DNA of 64,000 nt from Obrimoposthia wandeli. Its lineage: Eukaryota. The notes under the pieces were generated by a model that worked only from the letters and a program-made list of their open reading frames with translations, had not been told where the DNA came from and ran no database searches. The DNA lies in contig CDROCS010002105.1 of assembly GCA_977020255.1 (NCBI GenBank), forward strand, positions 124,001-188,000. Direction: 5' to 3'. Made by a program: the position numbers and the translations under genes. Numbering within the stretch: position 1 is the stretch's first letter; every line of letters begins with the position of its first letter. Below, piece by piece: positions 27,950 to 34,267 of the stretch.

Positions 27950-28951
27950 CTATTTTAAGGTGTAAGGAATACGGACGGTTAGTTGGAAGTCAGGGGCATC
28001 GGCTGTTAACCCTGCAGATGCACCAACATTGACGGTGGTATCACGACTTACAGCATAGTTAGCACCAACAGAAAGGGAGTCTAACTGTAAAACTTTAGCA
28101 TTAAAGTTTTCAATACCGCTAACCTTAGATTTAAAAATTGTTTTGTGGCTTAAGCCAAGGCTAAAGGAGAATCTAGGGTTAACAGCAAAGCCCATACCGG
28201 CACCAAAAGAAATGGTATCTCCTAGATCAATAGATGTTTCTGTGCCTGCTAAATTAACATCATCTTTAATATTCCAGATATAGCTAGTGTTCATGTAAAT
28301 AACAGCAGGATCAATGGGCATTATCATCGTTAAGCCTGGCTCTATGCTGGGAAAGCCTGAGCCAGTTGGTAAATCTTCAGGCGAACCTTCATACGGTGAG
28401 TCGCCCGTAGTGCTTTTGAAGCGTAAACTACCTATCCAATAAGGGGCGGTATTCATATTAAACTGATACTTAAAACCAGCCTCAATATCACCTAAACCAT
28501 TCCCATCTAAGTCAATTAATTTATCTTCGTCTTGGCCTATACCAGCAGAACGCTCAGAAATAGAATCGCTTCTATATATCCAAGGGATTCGCACCTCGAC
28601 TTCTAATCGGTTTGTTATGCCGTAACGACCAGATAGACCAAATGTTAGTGTTGTTCTATCAATATCACTCGCTTGTATTAATCCCACAATTAAAGAGGGG
28701 AGTACCGAGTAACCAACAACAGAGATAGTATTTGAAGAATTTTGCGTATAAGACAGTGAGGAATCTATAACAAATGATCCCCTTGGGGTTAATACGCCTG
28801 GTTGTTCAAAAATATCTGCAACTGTTTGAACACGCTTAGGTTTTTCTTCTTTAGCCTTTTCATTAGGTTCTGCATCCTCAGCTGCAACAACAGCTGTACT
28901 AGAACATAAAGCAAGAAGTGCAATCAGGCTTTTATATTTGAATTCTTTCAC
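27950..28951 (-). CDS. Outer-membrane beta-barrel transporter, FapF-like
   Basis: GTG start with RBS GAGG, signal peptide, RYGITNRLEVEVRIPW, GNGLGDIEAG, LPTGSGF, GLTADAPDF, C-terminal RIPY; divergent from the subunit genes. Confidence 0.8.
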   Translation of the reverse strand: MKEFKYKSLIALLALCSSTAVVAAEDAEPNEKAKEEKPKRVQTVADIFEQPGVLTPRGSFVIDSSLSYTQNSSNTISVVGYSVLPSLIVGLIQASDIDRTTLTFGLSGRYGITNRLEVEVRIPWIYRSDSISERSAGIGQDEDKLIDLDGNGLGDIEAGFKYQFNMNTAPYWIGSLRFKSTTGDSPYEGSPEDLPTGSGFPSIEPGLTMIMPIDPAVIYMNTSYIWNIKDDVNLAGTETSIDLGDTISFGAGMGFAVNPRFSFSLGLSHKTIFKSKVSGIENFNAKVLQLDSLSVGANYAVSRDTTVNVGASAGLTADAPDFQLTVRIPYTLK

Positions 28952-29078
28952 GATTTCCTCACTTCAATACAAAGGTAGTCCATAAAAAAATGTAAGTCGG
29001 TAACAAAATAATACCAACCAATAGAAAAAGCGTAGTAGATGATAAGTTAAGCTGTTAGTTATTTGTCTCAGAATAATG

Positions 29079-29092
29079 TCTTATATCTGAGA
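29079..29092. promoter_or_regulatory. Putative VpsR-type operator
   Basis: TCTTA-TATC-TGAGA, 9/10 match to TCTCA-N4-TGAGA, with an extra TGTCTCA half-site at 29064, inside the AT-rich divergent promoter region. Confidence 0.45.
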
Positions 29093-29326
29093 TGGAGGTG
29101 AAACAATCTTATAAATGATAAATGTAATATTTATGAGTCATTGTTTTTTTATTTGGAATATTTAATATATAAATTATAGAAATAAAAATTAATTTTTTAT
29201 ATTTAAAAAATTTCGAAGTTATTAAAAATAATACAAGGATATAATTTTACAACACTACTATTAAGTTATCTCGCAGCACATTGCGGGTAACAATAAAAAA
29301 ACAACAAACATATTTGGAGTAACACT

Positions 29327-30043
29327 ATGCGTAAAACTAATCTCGCACTTCTTGTGGCAATTGTTGTTAGTTCACCAATGGCATTCGCTTACGGTGGTGG
29401 TGGCGGCTATAACCAACAGGCACCAGTAAATTCAGACAATAATAATACTGATGTATATAAGGATAACGTCGGTAATAAAGACATCACATATACTTCAGAA
29501 GATAGCCATGACGTAAATCTCGATGTTGATGATTCATTTAATCATGAATCGAATTACGATAGCACGAAAGATATTGAGACAAATTATACCAAAAATGTGA
29601 GTCATGATTATGATAATGACACATTAAGAATGAAAAATATCAATAACGACGAAAGTTACTACAACCAAGATAACAGCGATAATAGTACAGTTTGGAAAGA
29701 GACTCTTAATGTAACAGAAGATATTAGCTGGGATGTTAATTTAGAAGAGAACCATTATGTATCAACCTCTTATTTAAGTGGTTATGTTACTGACAACGAA
29801 GTGACATATGGTGGTGCATGTTGTGACGGTGATGGTGGCAGTGGAGGTTATGGTCATCGTGGCGGTTATAATGATCATGATGATGATGGTGGAATGGGCG
29901 GTGACTTCTTTGTTGACCAGTCTAACTCTATGATGGATTCATTTAATGGTTCTTCCGGTATCAGCATGGCTGGTCAAAATGCGGGTAATAACTCAATGCT
30001 TCAGCAAAGTGCTAGCACAAATGCTGTTCTTGTTGGTTATTAG
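29327..30043 (+). CDS. Secreted D/N/S/T-rich putative fibre/amyloid subunit A
   Basis: Sec signal; DSFN/DSH/DNSDNS motifs; TYGGACCD; C-terminal SFNGSSGISMAGQNAGNNSMLQQ Fap-like repeat. Confidence 0.75.
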   Translation: MRKTNLALLVAIVVSSPMAFAYGGGGGYNQQAPVNSDNNNTDVYKDNVGNKDITYTSEDSHDVNLDVDDSFNHESNYDSTKDIETNYTKNVSHDYDNDTLRMKNINNDESYYNQDNSDNSTVWKETLNVTEDISWDVNLEENHYVSTSYLSGYVTDNEVTYGGACCDGDGGSGGYGHRGGYNDHDDDGGMGGDFFVDQSNSMMDSFNGSSGISMAGQNAGNNSMLQQSASTNAVLVGY

Positions 30044-30086
30044 ATAATTACTGGGAATTACTGAGTGTAATTCTCAGGAGGATGTT

Positions 30087-30419
30087 ATGAAATATTTAAC
30101 ACTGATAGTTGCAGTATTCATTACCTGTAGTGCAGCAGCAGATGAGTTGGATATTCTAGCAAGTTCTGAAATGCTAAGCGATACATCTATGAATCAATCT
30201 CGTGGCGGTCAATATGAGCTGAACATAGATGTAATGCATGCTGAATCAGACATGTACGGTGATGTTCAAGGAAATGGTGCCTACAATAATACGACAGGTG
30301 CCAATATGATAACTGAAGGTGCATTTGGTGAATCATCTGGTATTTTTAATGTGGTTCAAAATACTGGTAATAATGTTCTCATCCAAAATGCAACTGTAGT
30401 TAACTTGACGTTGAAGTAA
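30087..30419 (+). CDS. Secreted minor/nucleator-like subunit
   Basis: Signal; LSDTSMNQSRGG; AFGESSGIFNVVQNTGNNVLIQNATVVN. Confidence 0.75.
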   Translation: MKYLTLIVAVFITCSAAADELDILASSEMLSDTSMNQSRGGQYELNIDVMHAESDMYGDVQGNGAYNNTTGANMITEGAFGESSGIFNVVQNTGNNVLIQNATVVNLTLK

Positions 30420-30623
30420 ACTGTTAGTGTATCTAAGCTGACATATGAATAATATGTCAGCGACGACTCTACAGACCATTAATTAGGGGTTGTTTTATAG
30501 GGACTAACATCATTACTTAATACATGATTGCTTTTTATAATTAGCATTGTGTCTAATAGATATAATTAATAAACCCTGTGTTCTAGTTATTACAATAATA
30601 AATGACATATTCGGAGTAATATC

Positions 30624-31262
30624 ATGCGTAAATCAAATATCGCACTATTAGTAGCAGTTGTATTCGCATCACCACTAGCATTAGCTAATCCACCAGTTAC
30701 ACAAGACAGTTATAATACCGATAAGGTAATAGAAAATTCTTATAATACAGATCTTGACGCTGATAAGGTGGATAGCCACAACAAAGACGTTTATGTGACA
30801 AATGTTGGCAACACCGAATACAATAAGACGAAAGATTATACAAATGAAAGCAATACTGAAATCGATTACTCGAAGACGAGTGATAATGATACATTAACCA
30901 TGAAAAATATTGGTAATGATAGAAGCACCTGGAAACAAGATAACAGTGATAACTCGGCGAAAGCAACTTATGACACTACGATGGACTACTCTGAAACTTG
31001 GGATGTCAACGTAGAGATTGATACGTATATGTCGGCTGCTGAGTTAGATGGCGCAGTTATGGGCTCAAGTGTGACATATGGTGGTGCATGTTGCGATAGT
31101 GGTGGCAGTGGAGCAGGTGGTGATTTTACAGTTAATCAAACGAACTCTATGTCTAACTCTTTTGGTGATGCATCTGGTATCAGTATTGCGGGTCAGAACG
31201 TAGGTAATAACGCGTTGGTACAGCAAACTACAAGTACAAATGCGGCTTTGGTTGCCCCTTAG
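30624..31262 (+). CDS. Secreted D/N/S/T-rich putative fibre/amyloid subunit B (paralogue of 29327)
   Basis: Signal; DSYNTD/NSYNTD/DSHN/DNSDNS; TYGGACCD; SFGDASGISIAGQNVGNNALVQQ. Confidence 0.75.
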   Translation: MRKSNIALLVAVVFASPLALANPPVTQDSYNTDKVIENSYNTDLDADKVDSHNKDVYVTNVGNTEYNKTKDYTNESNTEIDYSKTSDNDTLTMKNIGNDRSTWKQDNSDNSAKATYDTTMDYSETWDVNVEIDTYMSAAELDGAVMGSSVTYGGACCDSGGSGAGGDFTVNQTNSMSNSFGDASGISIAGQNVGNNALVQQTTSTNAALVAP

Positions 31263-31416
31263 TCAATGAACTTATTTGTTAAGGGCCTTAGGGCCCTTAT
31301 TAATTTATTAAAATTTTTACAAATGAGACAAAAATTTTAATAAATTAATTAATAATTATACACAAGAAATAAATTGTCTATTAATGACTACATTTTTGTA
31401 CATATAACAGAATGGT

Positions 31417-32097
31417 ATGTTTATGAAAACGTCACTGTTTATTATTGTTAGTATTTTTCTGAGTACATCAGTTTCTGCTCTTGACTATTTTCCGAGTAGA
31501 GGTGCATATAATGTAAAAGTTAAAAGCTACCAAGAGAAGGTTTTTGGCGATGTACAACGGCAACAATATGATTTTAGTTGTGGCTCTGCGGCTGTTGCAT
31601 CGTTATTAACGTATCATTATGGTTTAGAAACATCCGAAAATTCCGTGTTTGAATATATGTTCAAAAACGGAGATAAAGAAAAAATAGAGCAACAGGGTTT
31701 TTCCATGTTAGATATGAAAAACTATCTGGAAGCTCAAGGGTTAACGGCAAATGGGTATAAATTACCGTTAATGAAATTTAAAAAATTAGGCATTCCAGGT
31801 ATTACAGTTGTAAATTTTGATGGCTATATGCATTTTGTTGTAATTAAAGGTATAAATAGCAGTCAAGTTATACTAGGTGATCCTTCTAGAGGGACGCTAA
31901 CAATGGATATTGATGATTTCAAAGAGGGTTACAAGGGCTTAGTTTTATTAGTGAAAAATAACGTCAAAATTGGTAAGGAAAGTTTCATAAAACAAGAAAA
32001 TTATAGTATTTACACGCCCTCTCCTATTTCAGAGGCTGTAACTAGAGAATCACTTGCAACCTTTAGTATTACTCTACCTGGGGCAAATGATTATTAG
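31417..32097 (+). CDS. Secreted stand-alone C39 cysteine peptidase, FapD-like
   Basis: Signal; RQQYDFSCGSAA (Cys), HFVV (His), GDP (Asp); no ABC domain. Confidence 0.9.
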   Translation: MFMKTSLFIIVSIFLSTSVSALDYFPSRGAYNVKVKSYQEKVFGDVQRQQYDFSCGSAAVASLLTYHYGLETSENSVFEYMFKNGDKEKIEQQGFSMLDMKNYLEAQGLTANGYKLPLMKFKKLGIPGITVVNFDGYMHFVVIKGINSSQVILGDPSRGTLTMDIDDFKEGYKGLVLLVKNNVKIGKESFIKQENYSIYTPSPISEAVTRESLATFSITLPGANDY

Positions 32098-32105
32098 AGG
32101 CTAGT

Positions 32106-32618
32106 ATGAAAAAAACATCAAAATGGTTTTTTGCATCTGTAATAGGAGGTGCGGCCTTTTGGGCCAATGCATCAATAAATTACGAGACTATAGATGATTT
32201 TGGTTTACTTACGATCAGTGAAACTGAAATGTCATCGATAAGAGGTGGTTTTGTATCAATTAATGATACGATAATTAATATTGGATTATCTATCTCGACG
32301 GCACTAAATGGTGAAACGGTATTCAGTTCCTATATTGCAGATCTAACGATCGATAATGGGGTGTTAACATCATCATTACCAGAAGAGACAGTGAAGCCAA
32401 TAAGTGTAGTCCAAAATGGTGGAGACAGTAGTAATCAAGCACCAACAACGATAAATATTGATGCTGGAAGCATTGCTAGTATTATTCAAAATACAGTTGA
32501 TAATACAACGATACGCGTCGAAACGCAGCTAGATATACAGGCTGATGTTAATAGCTTTCTTGAACGACAAGTTATTATTAATAGTATAGAAAACTCAATT
32601 TTGTATTCCACGTATTGA
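32106..32618 (+). CDS. Secreted FapE-like accessory subunit
   Basis: Signal; ISETEMSSIRGG; IIQNTVDNTTI. Confidence 0.7.
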   Translation: MKKTSKWFFASVIGGAAFWANASINYETIDDFGLLTISETEMSSIRGGFVSINDTIINIGLSISTALNGETVFSSYIADLTIDNGVLTSSLPEETVKPISVVQNGGDSSNQAPTTINIDAGSIASIIQNTVDNTTIRVETQLDIQADVNSFLERQVIINSIENSILYSTY

Positions 32619-32644
32619 TTAAAAAGATTGTTTTTTTCACCTTT

Positions 32645-32679
32645 AAAAAGGCATAGTAATTAATTACTATGCCTTTTTT
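32645..32679 (+). terminator. Terminator closing the peptidase/FapE-like unit
   Basis: AAAAAGGCATAGTAAT-TA-ATTACTATGCCTTTTTT. Confidence 0.85.
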
Positions 32680-32890
32680 GTTGTATTGGTGGCGATATTG
32701 ATAAAAATATTGATAATTTATTATAAATTAGAGGAACTTTTTAAAACAAATAAGTTGCTGATTTAGTAAGCCTATTTTTAATATTGATTAAAATGTCGCA
32801 TAAACAGATGGATAAAGAGTCATTTTCTTACTTCTGATACCCTACATACGTGTCATTTATTGCCTATATTCTTAATACATCAAAAATAAT

Positions 32891-34267
32891 ATGTACATTG
32901 ATAGCGTGGTGATTTCGATGGTGACTCAATCTAAAAATAAATCAATAAATGGTCGTCTTGTTGCAATTGGTTGTAATTATGAACCTTGGATAGCACTTCT
33001 TGAACAATCAGGATGGAAAACGCATTGCTGTTATGACCTTAGAACAGCAGATGCAATACTGGAAGAGTACAGCCCATGTATATGCATTGTTGATTTAAGC
33101 AATAACGATTTTAGCTTAAATAGTATTTCTTTGAGGGCAAATAAAACTAAACAAGTACGTTGGATTGCACTAATTAAAAAAGAGCAGCTAGAAACGGATG
33201 CTATCTGTCAGTTTATTAATAATTATTGTGTCGATTACTTTTCAATGCCAATCCCTAGCACCTTACTGTTAGACACTGTCGGGCATCAGCTTGGAATGCT
33301 TGAGATAGATGCGAAATCTTGGGTTGAGGTAACGTCACAGCACGATATGGGGCTGTATGGGGACTCTAAATCGATAAAGCAGCTTCGTGATATGGTTAGG
33401 CGTGTAGCATCAACTGAAGTGAATGTTTTTCTCACGGGTGAAAATGGTACAGGCAAAGAGCTTATCGCTAAATCAATTCATAACTTGTCTAAGCGTAAAA
33501 ATGCACCTTTTATTAATGTTAATTGCGGATCACTAACCTCAGATGAAGAGAAAATTGCTTTTTTAAATTCGACAACAAAACTTCATGATGATGAAAAGTC
33601 CAAATTTAATGGTACTATTTTGCTCGATAATGTTGAAGAGTTGTCTAAAGAACTACAAGATGAATTGCTAAGATATTTACAGGCACCTGCGGGGGAGTCT
33701 ATAGATGAAAATACAAATTGTGATATACGTATTGTTGTTTCATCAAGTGCAGATCTTGAAACTGCAGTTGCTAACGGTGAATTTAGTAAAGAGCTCTACT
33801 ATCGCTTGAATGTGTTCCATATTAAAGTGCCGACTCTTAGAGAACGCGGTTCTGATATTTATCTTTTAGCAGAAAAGTTTTTAAATCAGTTTTCTAATGA
33901 ATATAATACATTAGCATCGAGTTTCTCAGAAGATTCTAAGCAGTTACTGTTACGCTATAGCTGGCCTGGTAATGTTAGAGAGTTAATGAATCAAGTAAAG
34001 CGTGCAGCATTGCTTGCTGAGGGCAATGAAGTAAAAGCGGAACATTTTGATTTGCCAAGCAAATCTAACTTCAAGCAAAGCTTGCGTAATATTAAAGATG
34101 AAGCGGAAAAAGATGTATTAGTTGCTGTACTAGAAACACACCGTGGTCAAGTTGCTTCAGCAGCTAAAGATTTGGGTGTATCTCGTGCGACGATGTATCG
34201 TCTATTAAATAAACATAATATAGTTCCTGATGTTCGATATTATAATAATGGACAACTTGGTGAATAG
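32891..34267 (+). CDS. Atypical enhancer-binding protein, VpsR/CpsR-like regulator
   Basis: YEPW..GW, CIVDLS, KQVRW, GHQLGML N-domain typical of VpsR; Walker A GENGTGKE; no GAFTGA loop; Walker B LLDNV; HTH AAKDLGVSRATMYRLLNKH. Confidence 0.85.
   Translation: MYIDSVVISMVTQSKNKSINGRLVAIGCNYEPWIALLEQSGWKTHCCYDLRTADAILEEYSPCICIVDLSNNDFSLNSISLRANKTKQVRWIALIKKEQLETDAICQFINNYCVDYFSMPIPSTLLLDTVGHQLGMLEIDAKSWVEVTSQHDMGLYGDSKSIKQLRDMVRRVASTEVNVFLTGENGTGKELIAKSIHNLSKRKNAPFINVNCGSLTSDEEKIAFLNSTTKLHDDEKSKFNGTILLDNVEELSKELQDELLRYLQAPAGESIDENTNCDIRIVVSSSADLETAVANGEFSKELYYRLNVFHIKVPTLRERGSDIYLLAEKFLNQFSNEYNTLASSFSEDSKQLLLRYSWPGNVRELMNQVKRAALLAEGNEVKAEHFDLPSKSNFKQSLRNIKDEAEKDVLVAVLETHRGQVASAAKDLGVSRATMYRLLNKHNIVPDVRYYNNGQLGE

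Follow-up and report, generated by a model that had tools for sequence, protein, structure and literature searches.

The window is a stretch of 64,000 nucleotides, positions 124,001 to 188,000 of the forward strand of contig CDROCS010002105.1, from the assembly of Obrimoposthia wandeli (GCA_977020255.1). By its protein identities the contig is Photobacterium. Seven genes across positions 27950-34267 of the window encode, in this order, an outer-membrane beta-barrel, a 238-amino-acid (aa) protein, a 110-aa protein, a 212-aa protein, a C39 cysteine peptidase, a 170-aa protein and a VpsR-type activator. A protein named 'MULTISPECIES [Photobacterium]' shares 99% identity with the 110-aa protein, and proteins of P. 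profundum and P. indicum share 83-86% with the 170-aa protein. Both of these minor proteins carry a double-glycine (GG)-type leader motif behind a Sec signal, which makes them candidate substrates of the peptidase, and the peptidase gene lies between the two leader-bearing open reading frames (ORFs).

The peptidase and the two leader motifs

The peptidase (31417..32097, + strand) is a stand-alone C39 cysteine peptidase of 226 aa, which has its own Sec signal and matches both Pfam PF03412 (E=1.8e-22, 80 bits, cut-off 22) and the NCBIfam model FapD NF058616 (E=9.1e-41, 139.6 bits, cut-off 330). Among double-glycine proteases, LahT150 (6mpz) and PCAT1 (4ry2) can be aligned with it. The catalytic set of the window enzyme is formed by Gln49, Cys55 (nt 31579-31581), His139 (nt 31831-31833) and Asp155 (nt 31879-31881), and none of these four residues varies among 128 stand-alone homologues. 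Of these homologues, 117 have an N-terminal uncharged stretch that fits export or membrane anchoring. The classical context of C39 is an N-terminal domain of an ATP-binding cassette (ABC) transporter, whereas the enzyme of the window is a free protein.

The 110-aa minor protein (30087..30419, + strand) is composed of a Sec signal at approximately residues 1-18, a propeptide with the leader and one strongly conserved QNTGNNVLIQN repeat. Its leader motif, LSDTSMNQSRGG, occupies residues 30-41 (30174..30209, + strand). The 170-aa minor protein (32106..32618, + strand), which is FapE-like, has a Sec signal at residues 1-22, a leader-bearing propeptide, a beta-rich body, an IQNT repeat and a C-terminal helix, and its leader motif, ISETEMSSIRGG, occupies residues 37-48 (32214..32249, + strand). 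The Sec signals of these two ORFs were judged by eye, without a predictor, and the predicted cleavage sites are '...ITCSAAA|DE' in the 110-aa protein and '...FWANA|SINY' in the 170-aa protein. The distance from the predicted signal-peptidase site to the end of the GG is 21-23 residues in the former and 26 residues in the latter. The initial annotation of this DNA had placed the two motifs behind the Sec signals of these ORFs, where they are indeed found, and its estimate of 15-25 residues after the cleavage site is roughly right.

The strict leader pattern, [LIVM]x4[LM]x3R[GA][GAKR], matches just the 110-aa and 170-aa proteins among the 55 ORFs of at least 100 aa in the window. Its background is 5/680 long ORFs (0.7%), and shuffled versions of the two proteins match it at a rate of 0.15%. 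The absence of the motif from both major subunits of the operon (the 238-aa and 212-aa proteins), which had also been claimed, is borne out. GG runs are present in both subunits, and those of the 238-aa protein (YGGGGGY right after the signal peptide, and HRGGY) lack the upstream helix pattern. After removal of its signal peptide, the 238-aa protein would begin YGGGGGY.

AlphaFold2 models of the minor proteins place a short helix immediately ahead of the RGG in both cases, at residues 39-45 in the 170-aa protein (predicted local distance difference test, pLDDT, 68) and at residues 32-37 in the 110-aa protein (pLDDT 55). A Foldseek comparison of the 170-aa model with the PDB returned nothing at E <=0.001, and a PDB sequence search with the 110-aa family profile returned chance matches only, none of them to FapB/C. 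An hhalign comparison matches the 170-aa protein with the repeat found in the 110-aa family at E=3.4e-7. NCBI and UniRef entries widely label the 110-aa family 'carbon storage regulator'. The 110-aa protein has a Sec signal and matches neither CsrA nor any other Pfam or NCBIfam model, and its family has a constant place in a fibre-export operon, so this name seems wrong and looks like a propagated misannotation.

In the consensus of AMS/PCAT proteases, the leader has the form Leu-12 xxx Glu-8 Leu-7. Its helix packs positions -4, -7 and -12 into a hydrophobic groove of the protease, position -3 is tolerant, and positions -2/-1 are GG, GA or GS (PMC6363468). The leader of the 170-aa protein, with I-12, E-8, M-7, I-4, R-3, G-2 and G-1, is a full match to this canonical register, and the logo of its family has L/V at -12, Glu at -8 in 42%, L/M at -7 and M/L/Y/I at -4. 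The leader of the 110-aa protein matches the register at -12 (L), -7 (M), -2 and -1 only. Positions -2/-1 are GG in both window proteins; among their relatives -2 is G or A, and -1 can be any of G, K, R, Q and A. The S1 pocket would then be permissive, or the cut would come one residue sooner (RG|G rather than RGG|).

The likeness to the leaders of ABC-transporter systems such as ComA, PCAT1 and LahT thus lies in the register -12, -8, -7, -4, G-2 and G-1 and in the predicted helix before the GG, and on the enzyme side in a peptidase fold and catalytic residues that match those of the window enzyme. The systems also differ. The leaders of ComA, PCAT1 and LahT take the place of a Sec signal, whereas the window leaders sit after one. 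The C39 domain of those systems is part of an ABC transporter, whereas in the window a free periplasmic peptidase is paired with an outer-membrane barrel. Unlike classical leaders, those of the window kind have an invariant Arg at -3 and are relaxed at -1 over the wider family.

Conservation and linkage of the motif

The leader motif is the most conserved feature of both minor families across Photobacterium, Vibrio and Betaproteobacteria. In Photobacterium alone, residues E41, M42, S43, R46, G47, G48 and F49 of the 170-aa family are invariant. A wider alignment, which has 36 members at 17-87% identity and covers Photobacterium, Vibrio, further Gammaproteobacteria and Betaproteobacteria, has a mean column identity of 26%, and its only invariant columns are R46, G48, F49 and N129, with G47 at 90% or more. 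A conserved INIGL strand comes directly after the RGGF block in this family. The 110-aa family (33 sequences, from Vibrionaceae to Burkholderiales) has an invariant R39, followed by G/A and then by G/A/K/R, and Leu or Met at -12 and -7. In this family the leader is conserved, whereas the residues past RGG are poorly conserved.

More than 487 loci encoding relatives of the 110-aa protein were found in a scan of species-representative genomes, and the linkage counts were made on 80 fetched loci, 77 of which had enough flank. The C39 peptidase and a FapF-like barrel adjoin the 110-aa-type gene in 77/77 of the latter. Iterated searches with hidden Markov models (HMMs) fused the 110-aa, 170-aa and major-subunit families via their common Q/N repeat, so genes were classed by their position relative to the peptidase. 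The leader is present in 80/80 homologues of the 110-aa gene, in the RGG form in 69, and a motif-bearing gene lies just downstream of the peptidase in 73/77 loci, with RGG in 65 and Phe at +1 in 66. Conservation of RGG across homologues, which the initial annotation had named as a check of its proposal, holds in 69/80 homologues of the 110-aa gene and, for the downstream gene, in 65/77 loci. In single Vibrio loci, the gene upstream of the peptidase has RGK and the one downstream has RGGF. The gene order of major subunit, 110-like protein, C39, 170-like protein and barrel is kept from Vibrio to Massilia, Cupriavidus and Nitrosomonas.

Of the 351 Gammaproteobacteria genomes sampled, 46 have a FapD-like C39 gene that stands alone. 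The 54 fetched C39 loci are of three types, namely a FapE type, the window type and a third group of 28 other peptidase/barrel pairs, which played no part in defining the motif. The neighbours in the third group are unrelated small Sec-signal proteins, with one to four paralogues per locus, some of which match FilA/DUF6160. The leaders found after their Sec signals include LSDSALDNITAG, MSDSKLDKITGK and LNDTGLEQATGQ, and the consensus is L-x-D-x-x-L-x-x-[IV]-T-[GA]-[GKQ]. By a simple hydrophobicity rule for the Sec signal, which makes these counts approximate, 20/28 loci have at least one same-strand neighbour with Sec signal and leader within 2.5 kb, and such ORFs make up 47/676 of those near the peptidase (7.0%) vs 56/3759 of the background (1.5%), an odds ratio of 4.9 (p=1e-13).

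In the third group, many C39 genes lie directly beside that of a FapF-like barrel and have no FapE-like gene with them. The leaders end in T-A-G, T-G-K, T-G-Q or E-G-G. At one surveyed locus (L140:2256-3449, - strand) the longest ORF of the FapF-like barrel, of 397 aa, holds VSSADLDTQRGG at residue 67, and this ORF may be a leader-bearing barrel or an over-extended ORF call. The assembly of the window has a second FapD-like locus, at 2898603-2902142 of another contig (of at least 2.9 Mb), and the proteins encoded there are one with acidic D/S/N repeats, one of 119 aa with a Sec signal and LEELEKIRGLGG, a C39 peptidase that matches FapD at E=9e-39, and one of 163 aa that contains ...LAYSRGGF.

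Relation to Fap, Fil and curli systems

Pseudomonas FapD is a periplasmic protein, and FapC secretion requires its Cys38 and is abolished in the C38A mutant (Rouse et al. 2017, PMC5557850). According to that study, FapE is the only Fap protein for which N-terminal peptides are missing, the first peptide starting from residue 72, and FapB undergoes no N-terminal processing. The FapD target is called unclear there, with FapE suspected and FapF also considered, and a GG-motif search reported 'no canonical C39 sequences' (PMC5557850). Substrate and recognition sequence of FapD-type peptidases are undetermined according to this study and to a 2018 review from the same authors (PMC6173800), and a 2026 preprint goes no further than 'precursor processing'.

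The relationship of the 170-aa protein to FapE comes from a weak hmmscan match and a profile-profile alignment. Residues 21-114 match the NCBIfam model FapE NF058559 with E=0.0037 and 16.5 bits (cut-off 250), and residues 31-67 align by hhalign to the N-terminal block and hairpin of a FapE-like profile with E=6e-5 and a probability of 65%. The block and hairpin correspond to nodes 33-62 of the curated FapE HMM (Dueholm et al. 2013), in which nodes 33-45 read [LVI]xDxELAx[LM]RG[RK][YF], with a probability of approximately 0.93 for Gly at node 43. The same block is found in 11 FapE-like ORFs of the 351 sampled Gammaproteobacteria genomes, and its L, R and G are invariant. A search for the FapE family in the assembly of the window and five related genomes gave nothing at useful E-values, and a word-index protein search with the FapE-like alignment returned 14 metagenomic relatives only, none of them a named Pseudomonas FapE.

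By these alignments, canonical FapE bears a putative leader that is homologous to that of the window proteins and stands in the same register, with Arg or Lys for Gly at -1. The Arg/Lys at this position would account for the GG search having overlooked the site. The initial annotation had missed that canonical FapE and further periplasmic C39 systems have this site too.

The likenesses to Pseudomonas Fap are a periplasmic, Sec-exported C39 peptidase whose neighbours are a barrel of the FapF type and a FapE-like protein, the N-terminal L-x-x-x-[LM]-x-x-x-R-G-x-[FY] of that protein, which is followed by a conserved hairpin, and subunits with Q/N-rich repeats. The differences are also several. 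The FapD, FapF and FapE matches of the window are all far under the equivalog cut-offs of NCBIfam, and these proteins are homologues, not equivalogs. The operon has no FapA-like ORF and no recognisable match to the FapB/C repeat. Position -1 is Gly in the window, which gives the canonical GG, whereas it is Arg or Lys in FapE, and the window has a second leader-bearing protein, of 110 aa. The barrel gene of the window has a divergent orientation, and its product is without the long coiled-coil N-terminus. The locus is a divergent Fap-like fibre-export system and not a canonical fap operon. Vibrio loci of the same kind had been listed as deviant Fap, with fapA absent and the Vibrio form of the 110-aa protein called a one-repeat 'FapB' (PMC3792158).

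The barrel (27950..28951, - strand) is a FapF-like outer-membrane beta-barrel of 333 aa and the presumed export channel. It matches the NCBIfam model FapF NF058560 with E=4.9e-46 and 157.4 bits (cut-off 700), FilC with E=2.3e-18 and also Pfam Phenol_MetA_deg, and its gene is transcribed divergently from the other genes of the operon. Major subunit 1 (29327..30043, + strand), which is the 238-aa protein without leader motif, has a Sec signal, an acidic N/D/S-rich body, a vicinal Cys-Cys and a Q/N-rich C-terminal repeat, and it has no match in Pfam or NCBIfam. Its paralogue, major subunit 2 (30624..31262, + strand), is the 212-aa protein, which likewise has no Pfam or NCBIfam match and also lacks the leader motif. 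Both major subunits have the vicinal Cys-Cys (GGACCD) and the Q/N-rich C-terminal repeat, and this repeat is related to the one in the two minor proteins.

The Fil fimbriae of Acinetobacter sp. Tol 5 (NCBIfam NF050077-79) resemble the system in having FilB, a periplasmic C39 peptidase, and FilC, a FapF-like barrel. The FilA-like (DUF6160) neighbours in the surveyed loci have a Sec signal followed by L-x-D-x-x-L-x-x-x-T-G-Q. The window differs in that its matches to FilB (105 bits, cut-off 475) and FilC (67 bits, cut-off 630) are second-best after FapD and FapF, and FilA/DUF6160 has no match in the window in Pfam and NCBIfam searches. In curli, the N-terminal 22-residue segment of CsgA, a Sec-processed amyloid subunit, is the outer-membrane export address for CsgG. 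This segment differs from the leaders in that it stays in the mature subunit and no peptidase is involved, and the proteins are unrelated.

Proposed processing and its alternatives

The 110-aa and 170-aa proteins are probably tandem-addressed, with a Sec signal and then a GG-type leader that is cut by the periplasmic FapD-like peptidase before the protein is passed to the barrel. They would be made as pre-pro-proteins with two N-terminal addresses in tandem, the first of which, the Sec signal, would bring them to the periplasm and be taken off by signal peptidase. This removal would expose a propeptide of approximately 22-26 residues, whose last 12 would be the double-glycine-type leader, a predicted short helix that carries Glu at -8 and hydrophobic side chains at -12, -7 and -4 and that R-G-G follows. 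The FapD-like C39 enzyme may bind the leader helix as the C39 domains of ABC transporters bind bacteriocin leaders, cut at or next to RGG, and hand the mature protein to the FapF-like barrel. Outside the cell, the processed 110-aa protein and the FapE-like 170-aa protein might then prime or cap the assembly of the leaderless major subunits.

The reading of both proteins as C39 substrates is strongly supported by comparative evidence, namely the strict linkage of the motifs to the peptidase and barrel, their top conservation, the match to the canonical register and the homologous site in FapE, and the catalytic residues of the enzyme are intact. The initial annotation had proposed this relationship, which is strengthened by these observations, together with a cut after the GG, which is uncertain, as position -1 varies among relatives. 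Its further suggestion that the cut licenses nucleation or export is an inference.

Several points weigh against this processing. The leader of the 110-aa protein is the weaker of the two, with Ser at both -8 and -4. Position -1 is K or R in canonical FapE and sometimes K, R or A in the 110-aa family; K or R at this position departs from known C39 sites and requires a change in either the pocket or the scissile bond. The invariant Arg-3 and Phe+1 are foreign to canonical leaders and could serve another function. Canonical leaders form the extreme N-terminus of cytoplasmic precursors, whereas both window leaders come after a Sec signal. The AlphaFold2 models of both minor proteins are of low to moderate confidence, and the support for cleavage of the two proteins is comparative sequence evidence. 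The proteomics of FapE are compatible with a cut at the RG[RK] block; trypsin also cuts after R/K, so they cannot place the cut.

An alternative, rather unlikely, is that the leader docks or targets the protein and is bound and left uncut, with the C39 enzyme or the periplasmic face of the barrel holding the unfolded subunit, and that the true substrate of the peptidase lies elsewhere, for example in the periplasmic linker of the barrel. The inactive C39-like domains of HlyB-type transporters are known to bind without cleaving (PMC5557850, PMC5135000), FapF had been weighed as a target by Rouse et al. (PMC5557850), and the variable -1 position (K/R/Q) suits binding better than canonical cleavage. 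Against these points stand the invariance of the catalytic Q/C/H/D in 128/128 homologues, the loss of secretion in FapD C38A and the absence of approximately 70 N-terminal residues of FapE from the proteomics (PMC5557850), and the barrel protein of the window has no leader-type motif.

It is improbable that L...L...RGGF acts as an element of structure or assembly in the mature proteins, such as a capping helix with the first strand or a nucleation interface, and that its likeness to leaders is convergent and has nothing to do with the peptidase. The invariant Arg-3 and Phe+1 and the INIGL strand directly after them are not leader features and would fit such an element, and the AlphaFold2 models put the predicted helix near the beta body. 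The same leader pattern is nevertheless found in at least three unrelated families that share only a Sec signal and the presence of a periplasmic C39 beside them, its register is exactly that of the groove-binding positions, and the contrast in the 110-aa family between a conserved leader and poorly conserved residues past RGG also speaks against a role in the mature protein. Chance resemblance in two low-complexity secreted proteins, to which the frequency of GG in Gly/Asn/Gln-rich proteins and the match of a loose GG pattern to four other window ORFs might point, can be dismissed, as the strict pattern is rare in the window, in background ORFs and in shuffles and its conservation over bacterial classes effectively refutes this explanation.

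Processing of tandem-addressed proteins might also be general. Tentatively, and with a chance put just below even, all FapF-paired periplasmic stand-alone C39 peptidases (of Fap, of Fil and of the Vibrionaceae/Betaproteobacteria type) may read a GG-type leader behind a Sec signal, so that the leader would serve as a signal for outer-membrane secretion and come off as the protein is handed to the barrel. Under this general code, the L-x-D-x-E-L-x-x-[LM]-R-G-[RK] of FapE would be the long-sought site of FapD, and a type I (PCAT-style) leader and its peptidase would have been re-used in the periplasm.

FapD-type peptidases are essential for the export of functional amyloid in Pseudomonas, and the Photobacterium operon has the canonical (GG) version of the candidate site. 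The Vibrio operon type was already known as deviant Fap (PMC3792158), and FapE was already suspected as the target of FapD (PMC5557850). The alignment to FapE pinpoints one conserved 12-residue block of that protein, and a second candidate substrate family is added. In the literature searched, which fell short of most subscription journals, no description was found of a GG-type leader behind a Sec signal, and likewise none that names the conserved FapE block as a candidate site or a second leader-bearing substrate family. If the proposal is true, the combination of a Sec signal and, behind it, a GG-type leader read in the periplasm would be a new type of outer-membrane secretion signal, which could be used to predict the cargo of many uncharacterised C39/barrel gene pairs, and the site would be a handle on the export of biofilm fibres.

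The VpsR-type sigma-54 activator (32891..34267, + strand) has a Pfam VpsR domain (E=2.1e-48) and a Sigma54_activat domain, and it is the probable regulator of the operon. No VpsR-type activator was found in the fetched flanks of the Vibrio loci (10 kb per side where the contig allows); a homologue adjoins the Photobacterium loci, most betaproteobacterial loci and the FapE-type loci. The Photobacterium contig is embedded in an assembly of 1.35 Gb and 6912 contigs, and bacterial contigs in the assembly of a eukaryotic host presumably come from a symbiont or a contaminant.

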